A DNA stretch of 64,000 nt. Source: Selaginella moellendorffii. Lineage: Eukaryota; Plantae; Lycopodiophyta. The DNA lies in assembly GCF_000143415.4 (NCBI RefSeq), contig NW_003314262.1, forward strand, positions 5,349,876-5,413,875. The letters are read 5' to 3'. The notes below the pieces were generated by a model. That model was not told the DNA's origin and did no database searches. It was given only the letters and a program-made list of their open reading frames with translations. The stretch's first letter is position 1; the number at the start of each line of letters is the position of its first letter. Made by a program: the position numbers and the translations under genes. Below are positions 3,904 through 55,241 of this stretch, piece after piece.

Positions 3904-4596
3904 TCAAACGTATTCGTGGCCGGGCTCTGCGAGTGGCGAGTTCTCGGCCTGCATGCCCGTCTCGTTCCAGTAATCCACGAGAATGAAATCCTCCACGAAC
4001 GGCCCCTCCTTGAGCTTCGCCAGCACCACTTCCGGGCTGTTGTCAATCAGCTCCGCCTCGTCGATCCAGCGGAAGAACGCCAGGTAGCCGAAATCAAACC
4101 CCCTCGCTCGAACCGGCGAGAAATTGGGGCCGCCACCATCGAAGCTCGAGGTCCTGCTCGCCTCGGCGATCTCCGAGACGAGCTGCTCCCTGCCATCGCC
4201 GCACACCCCGTCCTTGAGCCGGCACAGCACGATCCTCTTTGCCTCGAAGAACTGGTCGACGTGCTTCTCGACGCTCGACTCCCAGTCCAGCGCCAAGACG
4301 GACTCGCAGATGGGATTCACGAACTTGTCCATGCAGTAAATCTGCGCTGGGTGGAGCGAAAGCGCGGCCAGCGCCGCCTTGTTCTGGTGCCGCGAGTGGA
4401 GGACGTGCGTGTAGCCACCGCTGAGAATTTTGTGCGCCGGCCATATAGACAGCACCGGTCCGGCCTTGAGGTGGAGGACGCCGTTGATGGCCCGCAGCTT
4501 GTTAAGTTGTTCCACCATCTCGGCTCGCTTCTCGGCCGAAGCCCAGTGCCGGGCCTTGAAAAGAAGGACGTGCTCCACCAGGTGAACGATCGGCAT
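3904..4596 (-). CDS. Stress-responsive A/B barrel (Dabb) domain protein with two domains
   Basis: VEHVLLFK...HLKAGP...GGYTHVLHSRH...HPAQ and a second domain GGPNFSPVRARGFDFG; intronless, 230 aa. Confidence 0.88.
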   Translation of the reverse strand: MPIVHLVEHVLLFKARHWASAEKRAEMVEQLNKLRAINGVLHLKAGPVLSIWPAHKILSGGYTHVLHSRHQNKAALAALSLHPAQIYCMDKFVNPICESVLALDWESSVEKHVDQFFEAKRIVLCRLKDGVCGDGREQLVSEIAEASRTSSFDGGGPNFSPVRARGFDFGYLAFFRWIDEAELIDNSPEVVLAKLKEGPFVEDFILVDYWNETGMQAENSPLAEPGHEYV

Positions 4597-4790
4597 CCTG
4601 GAGCTTCACTGCAAATCTCTGGAAGAAAACCAAGAGCACAAGCGTGAGAATTGTTGTCGCGCTGTTGCTTCACCATCTTGATCACAGCGCTACTTTCACT
4701 GAAGGGAGACTTGCTTTTTCTCACTCGCTCATCGAAACGACAGCACACCTCTTCGTAAACGTCTCCAGAAACTAAAAGATAAGTTTATAA

Positions 4791-4864
4791 TGCCGGAGAG
4801 TGGGATTGAACCACCGACCTTGTGATTTTCAGTCACACGCTCTAACCAAATGAGCTACTCCGGC
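4791..4864 (-). tRNA. tRNA-Phe(GAA), non-canonical body, copy 1
   Basis: GCCGGAG TA GCTC ATTTGGTTA GAGC G TGTGA CTGAAAA TCACA AGGTC GGTGG TTCAATC CCACT CTCCGGC A folds into a full cloverleaf, with a T4 run downstream. Confidence 0.92.
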
Positions 4865-5051
4865 ATCGTGCTGCCCTCATGAAGATATTCACAAGCCTGA
4901 GCGTGCTTTATGCATTGCTAAAATTAATGAAAAACAGCAAAAAGGTAATAAATGGTCGGGAAACTCGGGCAACAGCAATATATTGCAGCAAAAAACTTCC
5001 AAGCGCATGATCCTGCCAAGGTCTGTTTCTTCTTGAAAAAATCTAGACTAG

Positions 5052-5188
5052 AGCTTGCAGCAAGAATACAATGCAACTTTATGCTAAACAAAACCATAGA
5101 CTACATGACTACCATACAGCTTGCAGCAAGAATACAATGCAACATTATGCTAAACAAAACCATAGACTACATGACTACCATACAGCTT
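5052..5188. repeat. 66-bp tandem duplication between the tRNA genes
   Basis: 5052-5117 and 5118-5183 differ at one position. Confidence 0.95.
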
Positions 5189-5190
5189 TA

Positions 5191-5264
5191 TGCCAGAGAG
5201 TGGGATTGAACCACCGACCTTGTGATTTTCAGTCACACGCTCTGACCAAATGAGCTACTCTGGC
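5191..5264 (-). tRNA. tRNA-Phe(GAA), non-canonical body, copy 2
   Basis: Same as copy 1 except A4-T69 in place of G4-C69 and C at 20a. A CAACAA motif lies just upstream, as is typical of plant Pol III tRNA genes. Confidence 0.92.
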
Positions 5265-5503
5265 ACCTTGTTGCCCTACCGATGAACTTCGCGAGCCTGA
5301 GCAAACTTTGTACACCTGCATTGTAAAGTAAAATCTTAGACAAACCATAACTAAAACCAAGAGCTCCTGTATAAAGTGTTCGATCATAAGCACCGGATGA
5401 ATAGTAAAGAAACACTTAACTCTGTTAGCAGAGGGATGAACGCTGAGCAAAGCACAATCCAACAACATGATAGATTAATTTCGCAGCGAGGAAATCATCC
5501 AAT

Positions 5504-6132
5504 CTAAGCAGGATTCACAGTCCTCCTTGCGTCGGTCCACGCCTGAGCAATCGTTTTCTTCATGTTATCGTCGCCCTCGTCGTACATATTCTGCAACAAC
5601 AAGGTCACGATCGATCCAAAACCATGCATCCATGGAAGTTACCTTCGTCAGGTCCATGATGCCAGCCGTCGAATTCTTCCCTTCATCCGGCTTAAACTGT
5701 GCATCCACAATCGATCGTCTCAGACAAGAGAGAAAAGCGCGAAGAACAGACCTTGTCTTCCTTGTAGTGTAGATCGGTCCACCACAAGGCGCTTGGGCTT
5801 GACAATCACATTACTTGCCGCTGGATCTATAGGCTTGTGGAGCCTTGGAACACCCCACCGGTAGTTCTTCCCTGCCAAGACTCGTCCCGGAACTTCGATG
5901 ATACTTTGTCAGCGGAGACACCCTCGATTCCAAGGTAGATCTTCAAACGAGAAGAAAGCAAGTGAGTCGCTAGGCGAGATCGAGAGCTCACCCGCGAGGA
6001 GAGGGAGGATTCGTCGCCGCCAAGGCCGATGCTTGCGATCTCGGCGGAGAGCAGCGATTTCAGTCGCGGCCGCTTGGCTTGATCCAGCAGCGCCTTGAGC
6101 TCCTGGAGATCATCCATGACGTCTGGCGCCAT
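5504..6132 (-). pseudogene. Calcyclin-binding protein (CacyBP/SIP; CS and SGS domains), probably disrupted
   Basis: DLQELKALLDQAKRPRLKSLL; GKNYRWGVPRLHKPIDP; AGIMDLTK|NMYDEGDDNMKKTIAQAW. A frame change or deletion occurs near 5875. Confidence 0.75.
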
Positions 6133-6194: not shown

Positions 6195-7145
6195 TCTTAT
6201 TTTCTTTCCCCTTGCTTGCCTTGTCTTGCATCGTTAGCTTTGGCTGCTGCATCGAGGCGAGCTTTCCTTCCTTCTCTTCTCTCACGCGAGCGCCATAGCT
6301 CCCTCTCACCTAGAGATCGTCGAGGTACTTGCGCTGTGGAAAGCTCTCGGGGCACAGCTCCTTGAATCGTTTGTAGCATCTCTTGGCCCTCTCTTTCTCG
6401 CCGAGAGAATCATAGAGCAGTCCCTGGAGAAATCGTTGGATAAGTCACAGAAACTTTGAGAGCTAATCGAAGAACTTGGAAGTTCTCGTGAAGTTCTTCG
6501 TCACTCACCTGGCGGAGATATGGACGAAAGTCAGATCTTCCTTGGTCAGTTCCTCGTACTGCTCGAGAGCCTGTGTCAGCTTCTCCTGGAAGAAATCCAC
6601 CACTGGAGCTTAGAACAAGAAAAGAAAAATCTCACAAAGCTAATTCTAGTACCTGAGACGTAAGAATCTGGCCGAGAAGCATCTTAAAGTTGCGAGCTGC
6701 AAAGCTTTCTTTATGGCGGCATGGATCATCTCTAGAACCTGGGAGTCGTCTTCTCCATCTTTCTCCATAGCTAAAGCCAGTTCCTGGAGCAAAAAACACA
6801 CTGGTGCTTCTAAGGAAAACGACTGATTTGCAAAGCCTTCGCGGAGAAAGGTTGGATCTCCACAAGCTCCCGGAACTCCTCCCTGGAATGTCTCACATCC
6901 CCAACAAGCCCGTAAGCTCTGGCTCTCATGAATCTATACTCGAGATGCTCTGGCTCCAACTCGATCATCCTTCCCAGAACCTCAATCGCCTCCCCTCACC
7001 TCGCCATTTTCCATCCTGAGCGAGAGCAAAGCCTTGTAAGCCACCAAGTTGCCCGCCTCCTCCTCGATCGTCTTTAGCACCGCCTTGAGCGTCCTCTCAT
7101 TGGCCTTTGCGCGAAGAACCCTGGACGGAACCTTTGAGCTCTTCC
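6195..7145 (-). pseudogene. SLOW GREEN1-like TPR protein remnant
   Basis: AIEVLGRMIELEPEHLEYRFMRARAY...RNFKMLLGQI...ALEQYEELTKED...QGLLYDSLGEKERAKRCYKRFKELCP. Frameshift near 6985 and an in-frame stop near 6310. Confidence 0.7.
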
Positions 7146-7149
7146 CTGG

Positions 7150-7375
7150 CTTCTCGACGAGCTCTCTCTTGATTCCTTCTCTGCGTTTGAGCTCCCAGAA
7201 GATCACGTAGTGCGCACGAACAGCGGTGGAATTGCCGTAGGCTATGAAGTTCGCGACCTCGATCCCTGCCTCTTTTAACACCTCCTTTACCACATTTTGG
7301 AGCTCTTGCTCGTCGACCATCTCGTTTTGGACGCTCAGAACCGCGTTCTTGCGGTGGCTAAAAGCCAGCTGGGAA
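7150..7375 (-). pseudogene. GH3 acyl-acid amido synthetase C-terminal fragment
   Basis: RKNAVLSVQNEMVDEQELQ...HYVIFWEL resembles the GH3 motif RKNxxLS...PGHYVIFWEL. The rest of the gene is absent. Confidence 0.75.
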
Positions 7376-7771
7376 AAACTTGATACTTTCATCATAGCGT
7401 GGTTATTAGGAATTCTCAACCATTCATTTAAGGAACCTATAGCCAAACTAAATAAGGTTGCAAGTGATCTAAAATGCACTTGTATAGCTAATAAAAGATG
7501 GCAAAAGCATTATGGCATTGATGGGTTGCAGACATTATATAAGGCACCACCACCACCTATTTTGCATAGAGCCGCTAAAAGCAATCTCCTCTAAGTAAGA
7601 CATTTAATTTACATCTGGACCATGTGGACACGCTTACCTTTGCTCAACACCATTTACTCATTTTAGTCAGTCGGGATCCCAAGTTCAATTACGGAATTTG
7701 CTTTTGTTTTCTCTCCGCTGACATATAGTGAAACCATAAATTCAATGGTGGTGTAATTTATTTTTATAGTT

Positions 7772-54667: not shown

Positions 54668-54741
54668 GGTTTCATGGTGTAGTTGGTCATCACGTCAGTC
54701 TAACACACTGAAGGTCTCCAGTTCAAACCTGGATGAAGCCA
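54668..54741 (+). tRNA. tRNA-Val(AAC)
   Basis: GGTTTCATGGTGTAGTTGGTCATCACGTCAGTCTAACACACTGAAGGTCTCCAGTTCAAACCTGGATGAAGCCA forms a cloverleaf with a T-run downstream. Confidence 0.95.
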
Positions 54742-55167: not shown

Positions 55168-55241
55168 GGTTTCATGGTGTAGTTGGTCATCACGTCAGTC
55201 TAACACACTGAAGGTCTCCAGTTCAAACCTGGATGAAGCCA
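55168..55241 (+). tRNA. tRNA-Val(AAC), identical copy
   Basis: Identical to 54668-54741. Confidence 0.95.

Follow-up and report, generated by a model that had tools for sequence, protein, structure and literature searches.

A tandem pair of nuclear tRNA-Phe(GAA) genes with a putative tRNA-Asn-type body in Selaginella moellendorffii

Where does a nuclear tRNA come from if its anticodon and discriminator belong to phenylalanine and many of its other nucleotides belong to asparagine? This question is raised by two tRNA-Phe(GAA) genes on the minus strand of Selaginella moellendorffii contig NW_003314262.1, copy A (4791–4864) and copy B (5191–5264). Coordinates refer to the 64,000-nt stretch that was analysed (positions 5,349,876 to 5,413,875 of the contig), here called the window. 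An earlier note on this DNA had described the pair as lacking cytosolic Phe identity, and had proposed either a remodelled tRNA-Asn body or a bacterial-type tRNA, possibly for organellar import. According to our analysis, the pair is best read as a tandem of nuclear RNA polymerase III genes that selection has kept, and which would encode a non-canonical tRNA-Phe(GAA) isodecoder with a body of the eukaryotic cytosolic tRNA-Asn type. We give this reading a probability of about 55%, and it would probably represent a rare nuclear tRNA identity switch in a plant.

Structure and maintenance of the gene pair

ARAGORN reported four tRNA genes in the whole window, including two tRNA-Phe(gaa) genes on the minus strand at 4790–4865 and 5190–5265. 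Rfam model RF00005 (gathering score 29) gave 71.8 bits at 4791–4864 and 71.3 bits at 5191–5264. Both copies form complete 74-nt cloverleafs with a 7-bp acceptor stem, a D loop of 9 nt (A14 U15 U16 U17 G18 G19 U20 U/C20a A21), the anticodon loop C U G A A A A (G34 A35 A36, then A37 and A38), the variable loop AGGUC (with C48), the T loop UUCAAUC and A73, and the tertiary nucleotides U8, A14, G18, G19, U33, G53, U54, U55, C56 and A58 are all present. ARAGORN, Rfam and the minus-strand sequence agree on the features from which the earlier note started (full cloverleafs with GAA, A37, U20, A73 and U15). The 15:48 position is occupied by a non-standard U15/C48 pair, and U15 is truly unusual, because G15 is invariant in all 37 aligned comparison Asn and Phe tRNAs.

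Three sites distinguish the two copies: positions 4 and 69, paired as G4:C69 in copy A and as A4:U69 in copy B, and position 20a, which on this haplotype is U in copy A and C in copy B; the rest of copy B equals copy A. The paired swap at 4 and 69 had been recorded before, while the third site at 20a had been overlooked. The swap lies in CCGG sites (GCCGGAG / CTCCGGC), as the earlier note had pointed out, so each of its two steps was likely a CpG transition.

In sequence, both genes have the internal A and B boxes and the downstream T run of type-2 (tRNA) polymerase III genes. The B box GGTTCAATCCC is intact in both copies, and the A box TAGCTCATTTGG departs from the consensus at position 15. 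T4 runs on the minus strand, which are candidate polymerase III terminators, lie 14–17 nt past copy A (4774–4777) and 32–35 nt past copy B (5156–5159). Since each gene has its own B box and T4 run, separate polymerase III transcription of copies A and B is plausible. The 50 nt or so upstream of copy A (4865–4914, minus strand) align with those upstream of copy B (5265–5314, minus strand) at 34 of 50 positions, and are the remnant of the duplicated unit, possibly also a promoter region. CAACAA stands directly before copy B; such CAA motifs commonly precede tRNA genes in plants.

No third tRNA-Phe copy was found in the window at up to 3 mismatches (0 matches expected by chance), and a covariance-model search of 98 kb, a part of the genome, returned only the two genes and their two alleles, with no degenerate copies. 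As regards a tRNA-derived SINE or dispersed repeat, of which many scattered copies with a common non-tRNA tail would be expected, the similarity between A and B reaches no further than 50 nt on the upstream side and stops at the 3' end of the tRNA.

The same gene pair exists on the other haplotype, which is represented by contig GL377570.1 of GCA_000143415.2 (L121). The 4:69 pair is G4:C69 in copy A and A4:U69 in copy B on either haplotype, and U20 and A37 are found in 4 of 4 gene copies. Position 20a behaves differently: here copy A has T and copy B has C (4844 and 5244), and the two are reversed on the other haplotype (L121 5336 and 5754). This could reflect repeated mutation of a D-loop site under no constraint, or else gene conversion or reciprocal exchange between copies A and B.

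The paralogs agree at 71 of 74 tRNA positions versus 34 of 50 upstream ones (Fisher p=5e-5), and downstream the similarity is at random level. From this difference between the tRNA and its diverged flanks it follows that the duplication is old and that the tRNA part is under constraint. Moreover, two of the three differences between A and B make up a compensatory pair (G4:C69 to A4:U69), in which pairing is preserved and which is fixed in both haplotypes. The divergence between haplotypes (2 of 148 positions in the tRNAs vs 27 of 664 in the flanks) is not significantly different (p=0.14), a comparison with low power to detect constraint.

Sampled words of the tRNA occur in sequencing runs under at least 5 organism labels. 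For example, a 1214-nt contig from run X6, whose organism is labelled differently, covers 4791–4877 with 3 differences, none of them listed inside the tRNA; its spacer to the 5' region of the neighbouring Dabb gene is 202 nt vs 139 nt here, and the remainder is unalignable. We read this contig as the tRNA conserved in a related species with diverged flanks. From these comparisons, both genes appear intact and kept by selection, and they are almost certainly functional.

Origin of the tRNA body

Comparison tRNAs were collected by a metagenome scan with a pattern that covers D stem, anticodon arm and variable loop and fits the query as well as eukaryotic Phe and Asn tRNAs. The scan yielded 120 loci with 42 GAA, 40 GTT and 39 GAT tRNAs, among them a bacterial-type tRNA-Ile(GAT) from a human-gut metagenome (L029), which was used in the pooled tRNA table only. 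Two sequences that the earlier note had given were recovered as real ones. The G20/G37 tRNA-Phe starting GCGGGGA occurs in 16 copies (e.g. L118), and tRNA-Asn(GTT) genes of eukaryotic type, such as L006 and L116, fit the quoted template TAGAGCGTGTG.CTG..AA.CACAAGGTCGG.GGTTC exactly. We take L006, L116 and L118 to be plant-type, by their likeness to the Arabidopsis genes.

In a positional alignment outside 35, 36 and 73 (71 positions), the pair shows 12 differences from tRNA-Asn (L006, L116) vs 23 from plant-type tRNA-Phe (L118). Asn-like states are found at 6:67, U20, U20a, 28:42, 29:41, A37, 50:64 and 52:62, and the 9-nt D loop is that of the Asn set, while A31:U39, the anticodon and A73 resemble Phe. 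A tie in pairwise identity (59/74 with Asn, 58/74 with plant Phe) was discarded as a gap-shift artefact, the positional alignment giving 59/74 vs 51/74.

In a maximum-likelihood tree with 34–36 and 73 masked, the pair lies within the clade formed by 20 tRNA-Asn (ultrafast bootstrap 96, SH-aLRT 92); the eukaryote-type Phe clade and the A37 Phe groups of organelles and bacteria fall elsewhere. Three covariance models of our own (Asn, eukaryote-type Phe and A37 Phe, the last built from organellar and bacterial tRNAs) stood in for the tRNAscan-SE isotype models; they are small and come from the pattern-selected set. The Asn model gave 83.2 bits to copy A and 80.1 bits to copy B, despite their non-Asn anticodon and discriminator, and the eukaryote-type Phe model gave 75.7 and 73.9 bits. 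For calibration, Phe tRNAs score 63.9–80.3 bits on the Asn model (eukaryotic Phe 67–74, A37 Phe 64–80), and true Asn tRNAs score 65–69.5 bits on the eukaryotic-Phe model.

By identity nucleotides, the pair is neither a standard tRNA-Asn nor a standard cytosolic tRNA-Phe. It has GAA and A73 in place of GUU and G73, and G73 is invariant in the 20 aligned Asn tRNAs. It also lacks G20 and G37; G37 is invariant in 7 of 7 eukaryote-type Phe tRNAs, and G20 is present in 6 of 7, the seventh having G at a neighbouring D-loop position. The molecule thus looks like an Asn body with Phe identity nucleotides, a description that the data are consistent with but do not decide. Among the alternatives tested, a remodelled eukaryotic tRNA-Asn body is the best-supported origin, fitting best by alignment, masked tree and the comparison of Asn with eukaryotic-Phe model scores, in line with the first of the two origins that the earlier note had offered.

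Several results weigh against this origin. The contrast of 12 with 23 differences is borderline (Fisher p=0.05), and A31:U39 is a Phe state. When position 37 is masked too, Asn tRNAs are still the nearest neighbours, but the supported Asn clade is lost, and approximately unbiased (AU) tests under this masking reject neither union with eukaryote-type Phe (p=0.26) nor union with all A37 Phe (p=0.068); the phylogeny that had been suggested as a check therefore places the pair with Asn under the lighter masking and leaves a Phe grouping unrejected under the heavier one. Likewise, the suggested comparison of isotype scores put both the Asn and the A37-Phe model above the eukaryotic-Phe model for both copies, and the A37-Phe scores (83.7 bits for copy A and 82.5 bits for copy B) are as high as the Asn scores. 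The signal comes from only about 70 columns, in which paired sites are not independent, and the comparison pattern is one that the query itself satisfies, in a metagenomic set without S. moellendorffii's own tRNA-Asn or canonical tRNA-Phe. The path from Asn to Phe also needs two anticodon substitutions, passing through Tyr or Ile anticodons. Finally, no mature CCA-tailed reads were seen: run X31, an RNA run of poly(A) type, had no read on copy A or copy B, a result that says nothing either way, as 0 tRNA reads are expected of such libraries (paired cDNA, about 12% of it read). Because of the few columns, the pattern-selected references and the set without Selaginella's own Asn and Phe genes, the evidence for an Asn origin is not decisive.

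The strongest competitor on origin, which is unlikely but deserves serious weight, is a divergent ordinary cytosolic tRNA-Phe with no Asn ancestry, whose Asn-like states arose by drift, convergence or patchy gene conversion from tRNA-Asn. It is permitted by the AU test with eukaryote-type Phe (p=0.26) and accommodates the Phe states A31:U39, GAA and A73. Non-plant eukaryotic tRNA-Phe genes such as L050 share the 5' GCCGG and reach up to 59/74 identity, and isodecoders within Selaginella can differ by 18–20 nt. However, it requires changes at 6:67, 20, 20a, 28:42, 29:41, 37, 50:64 and 52:62, all of them toward Asn, and both the free maximum-likelihood tree and the covariance scores favour Asn.

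Returning to the tRNA-Asn-type body, the history that we infer, its order included, would begin with the duplication of a tRNA-Asn(GUU) gene. Changes at anticodon positions 35 and 36 (GUU to GAA) and at the discriminator (G73 to A73) would follow, through which the determinants of asparaginyl-tRNA synthetase (AsnRS) would be lost and the main determinants of phenylalanyl-tRNA synthetase (PheRS) gained, and the new Phe gene would afterwards be duplicated in tandem. AsnRS depends on the GUU anticodon and G73. Sampson in 1989 and Nazarenko in 1992 are said to have found that the yeast and human cytosolic PheRS recognise G20, G34, A35, A36 and A73. Four of these five nucleotides (G34, A35, A36 and A73) are present in the pair, and G20 alone is missing. 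With four of the five Phe nucleotides and neither of the Asn determinants, charging with phenylalanine is expected, perhaps less efficiently by the cytosolic enzyme because of U20. It was therefore too strong to call the pair devoid of cytosolic Phe identity: G20 is indeed absent, but GAA and A73 are cytosolic Phe determinants as well.

The product would then read UUU and UUC. It would owe U20 and A37 to its Asn ancestor, and would have neither G20 nor wybutosine at position 37. Wybutosine is impossible there because position 37 is A, and N6-isopentenyladenosine (i6A37) is a candidate instead, because of the A36-A37-A38 loop, the motif used by tRNA isopentenyltransferases. Literature searches found nothing for part of the tRNA sequence and nothing relevant for Selaginella combined with phenylalanyl-tRNA synthetase.

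Organellar use and the weaker alternatives

Whatever its ancestry, the pair might encode a dedicated organellar tRNA-Phe, chiefly a mitochondrial one, suited by U20, A37 and A73 to the monomeric bacterial-type organellar PheRS. This proposal, which we hold to be doubtful, is compatible with the tRNA-Asn-type origin and adds a function to it. Its setting, as the earlier note had given it, agrees with the literature: Selaginella mitochondria have no tRNA genes, and Selaginella plastids have lost many, with a mean of 11.6 tRNA genes left. No case is known of the two-subunit cytosolic PheRS being redirected to mitochondria, so imported tRNA-Phe has to be charged by the organellar PheRS (PMC10375062), and a variant without G20 is one without a determinant of the cytosolic enzyme.

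Selaginella kraussiana provides further motivation. Its plastids import about forty nuclear tRNAs, including a plastid-like tRNA-Pro and a bacterial-like tRNA-Arg, whose nuclear genes are expressed, and divergent isodecoders of the same family differ in plastid import (PMC11573648). Nuclear tRNA-Asn accounts for 40% of plastid tRNA-Asn in this species despite a plastid-encoded counterpart. Because it is one of only two such nuclear tRNAs in plastids, an Asn-type body may be import-competent.

However, U20 and A37 are accounted for by Asn ancestry alone. The earlier note had taken them for bacterial or organellar features, but tRNA-Asn has both, so no organellar adaptation is needed to explain them, and most simply they are Asn leftovers rather than bacterial traits. 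The cytosolic enzyme, too, has GAA and A73 as its main determinants. In Arabidopsis, mitochondria use imported canonical tRNA-Phe with an ordinary organellar PheRS (PMC10375062). The plastid retains trnF, and in S. kraussiana the plastid still has and expresses a tRNA-Phe of its own, whereas the nuclear tRNA-Phe that was probed for does not enter plastids (PMC11573648), so only the tRNA-less mitochondrion would need an imported tRNA-Phe. The S. kraussiana study (Berrissou et al. 2024) describes no such tRNA-Phe isodecoder (PMC11573648).

In Sileneae, the 'two-body problem' of PheRS is met on the enzyme side, the organellar PheRS charging imported canonical tRNA-Phe, sometimes after enzyme duplication (PMC10375062). 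A tRNA-side answer to the PheRS mismatch is conceivable in Selaginella. The fuller scenario, in which Selaginella, whose mitochondria could not easily take in the two-subunit cytosolic PheRS, rebuilt an import-competent tRNA-Asn body as a dedicated organellar tRNA-Phe tailored to the bacterial-type organellar PheRS, a tRNA-side instead of an enzyme-side solution, is even less likely than organellar use as such. Organellar import of the pair's product is only a weakly motivated possibility.

It is quite improbable that the pair makes no working tRNA, being silent or decaying copies or a tRNA-like element relevant only within neighbouring mRNAs. Copy B does lie in the 3' untranslated region (UTR) of a spliced CacyBP-like transcript, apparently made by RNA polymerase II. 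Mature tRNA reads were absent, U15/C48 stands in place of the usual Levitt pair, the 4:69 swap falls at CpG sites, and the haplotype divergence of the tRNAs is not significantly lower than that of the flanks. Against non-function stand the perfect cloverleaf, intact B box and T runs in 4 of 4 gene copies, the strong paralog constraint (p=5e-5), the co-occurrence of two CpG changes with pairing preserved, and the conservation of the tRNA between diverged flanks in the contig from another organism.

Least probable is a bacterial, mitochondrial or plastid gene moved to the nucleus, like the bacterial-like tRNA-Arg and plastid-like tRNA-Pro of S. kraussiana: bacterial and organellar tRNA-Phe typically have A37 and U20, the A37-Phe model gives 83.7 bits, and a tRNA-Phe on an AT-rich organellar contig (L054, with rps12 and rpl2) is 64/74 identical with the same 5' acceptor strand, but the anticodon arm with the start of the T loop has 0 exact matches in 185,579 species of bacteria and archaea, searched with one genome per species, and the same anticodon-arm pattern has 0 matches in IMG/VR viral contigs, the variable loop with the T arm occurs in many bacteria only with CGT, TGG, CAT, GAC or TAC anticodons (at most 61/74 identity), the tree separates the pair from both A37-Phe groups, and the 9-nt D loop matches the eukaryotic tRNA-Asn set. 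The bacterial-type tRNA of the earlier note is likewise not supported, the anticodon-arm pattern being absent from those genomes and the T-arm matches never carrying GAA. Land-plant organellar tRNA-Phe generally has a GUGUC variable loop and is probably much less similar to the pair.

The two closest sequences of the metagenome set were set aside as clues to ancestry, being uninformative on plants: the tRNA-Phe of L054 (64/74), from the AT-rich organellar contig, and a tRNA-Asn (L036, 65/74) from a giant-virus-like contig (Bro-N, Rpb5, T5orf172). In the former (150–221; contig 18–27% GC), the tRNA-Phe has GAA, A37 and a U51/C63 mismatch in the T stem. In the latter (4798–4871), the tRNA-Asn(GTT) has the same anticodon stem as the Selaginella tRNA-Phe, and its T arm is one pair off (50:64).

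Genomic neighbourhood and known systems

Downstream of copy A lies a two-domain Dabb (stress-responsive A/B barrel) gene (3904–4596, minus strand; Pfam PF07876, E=2.9e-20), whose ATG is 195 nt from the tRNA and whose protein is 97% identical to SELMODRAFT_406351 of S. moellendorffii, the product of the allele on GL377570.1. A synteny search with this protein found a paralog in S. moellendorffii (L242) and one other, unrelated genome (L243), with no tRNA near either.

Upstream of copy B is a CacyBP/SIP-like gene with a Siah-Interact_N domain, an SGS-like C-terminus and a TAG stop at 5506–5504. A 54-nt GT..AG intron lies in its 3' UTR (5367–5420, minus strand), as seen in a spliced, RNA-like contig from run X16. 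This contig (3052 nt, depth 389, run guessed to be RNA) joins 5365 to 5420 and continues through copy B to 5152. Judging from the spliced contig and the position of the stop codon, copy B is sense-oriented in the last 3'-UTR exon of the CacyBP-like gene. The segment 5152–5506 may thus be part of a joint (dicistronic) mRNA-tRNA transcript, like those considered for mobile mRNAs in plants. A 66-nt unit past copy B, which includes its T run, is present twice here (5049–5180, 97% identical) and once on the other haplotype. The end at 5152, shared by the X16 and X19 contigs, was not accepted as a transcript end and is taken for a break of the de Bruijn graph at this tandem repeat.

Between the CacyBP-like gene and a GDSL-lipase gene, an open reading frame at 6982–7479 (minus strand) has only a fragment of the GH3 C-terminal domain and is probably what remains of a GH3 pseudogene. 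On the plus strand, at 54668–54741 and 55168–55241, the window has two tRNA-Val(AAC) genes of identical sequence at a distance of 500 bp. They were missed at the gathering threshold by the Rfam pass over the whole window and scored 59.9 bits when the region was searched alone, so the miss is a filter artefact and not a gene defect.

If the tRNA-Asn-type origin is right, the pair would be a clear plant case of a nuclear tRNA whose identity was changed by coordinated anticodon and discriminator changes and which was then kept and duplicated, and Selaginella would have gained a phenylalanine tRNA without G20 and incapable of carrying wybutosine. It would offer a test case for what decides organelle entry among isodecoders, and for whether tRNAs rather than synthetases can adapt to bridge cytosolic and organellar translation, questions that arise from studies of tRNA import in Selaginella and of PheRS in plants whose mitochondrial tRNA-Phe has been lost. 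As a minor cytosolic isodecoder, it would be a modest curiosity for tRNA gene annotation.

Compared with canonical eukaryotic cytosolic tRNA-Phe, the pair shares GAA, A73, A31:U39 and the AGGUC variable loop. It differs in U20 (not G20), A37 (not G37), a 9-nt rather than 8-nt D loop, U15, and the anticodon and T stems, amounting to 23 differences from the plant-type sequence. Bacterial and organellar tRNA-Phe share with it U20 and the A37 of the A36-A37-A38 loop, whereas it has no prokaryotic match for its anticodon arm and does not cluster with them.

Within the genus, the plastid-like and bacterial-like tRNAs of S. kraussiana are likewise non-canonical nuclear genes standing beside canonical cytosolic ones. 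However, they have plastid or bacterial bodies and are enriched in plastids, whereas the pair has a eukaryotic, probably Asn-type, body and no bacterial relative. Another parallel is the S. kraussiana tRNA-Ile(CAU) derived from eukaryotic tRNA-Ile(AAU) (PMC11573648), which also has a eukaryote-type nuclear body, a new anticodon and several copies. In that case the amino acid stayed the same and the tRNA is expressed and found in cytosol and plastids, whereas the S. moellendorffii pair would involve a change of amino acid.

The alloacceptor anticodon shifts of eukaryotic nuclear genomes, of which 30 cases were described, none from plants in that paper (tRNA remolding; Rogers & Griffiths-Jones 2014, PMC3923123), resemble the pair most in kind: a nuclear body of one amino-acid family has the anticodon of another, and an identity position, in our case the discriminator, has changed as well. 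Those shifts were recognised through synteny, and in most of them one anticodon substitution separates closely related species. The Selaginella case would need two anticodon substitutions plus G73 to A73, in a plant, in duplicated genes with decayed flanks. The pair would therefore belong to a known kind, the alloacceptor anticodon shift, as an unusual member: a plant case with two anticodon changes and a discriminator change, retained and duplicated.

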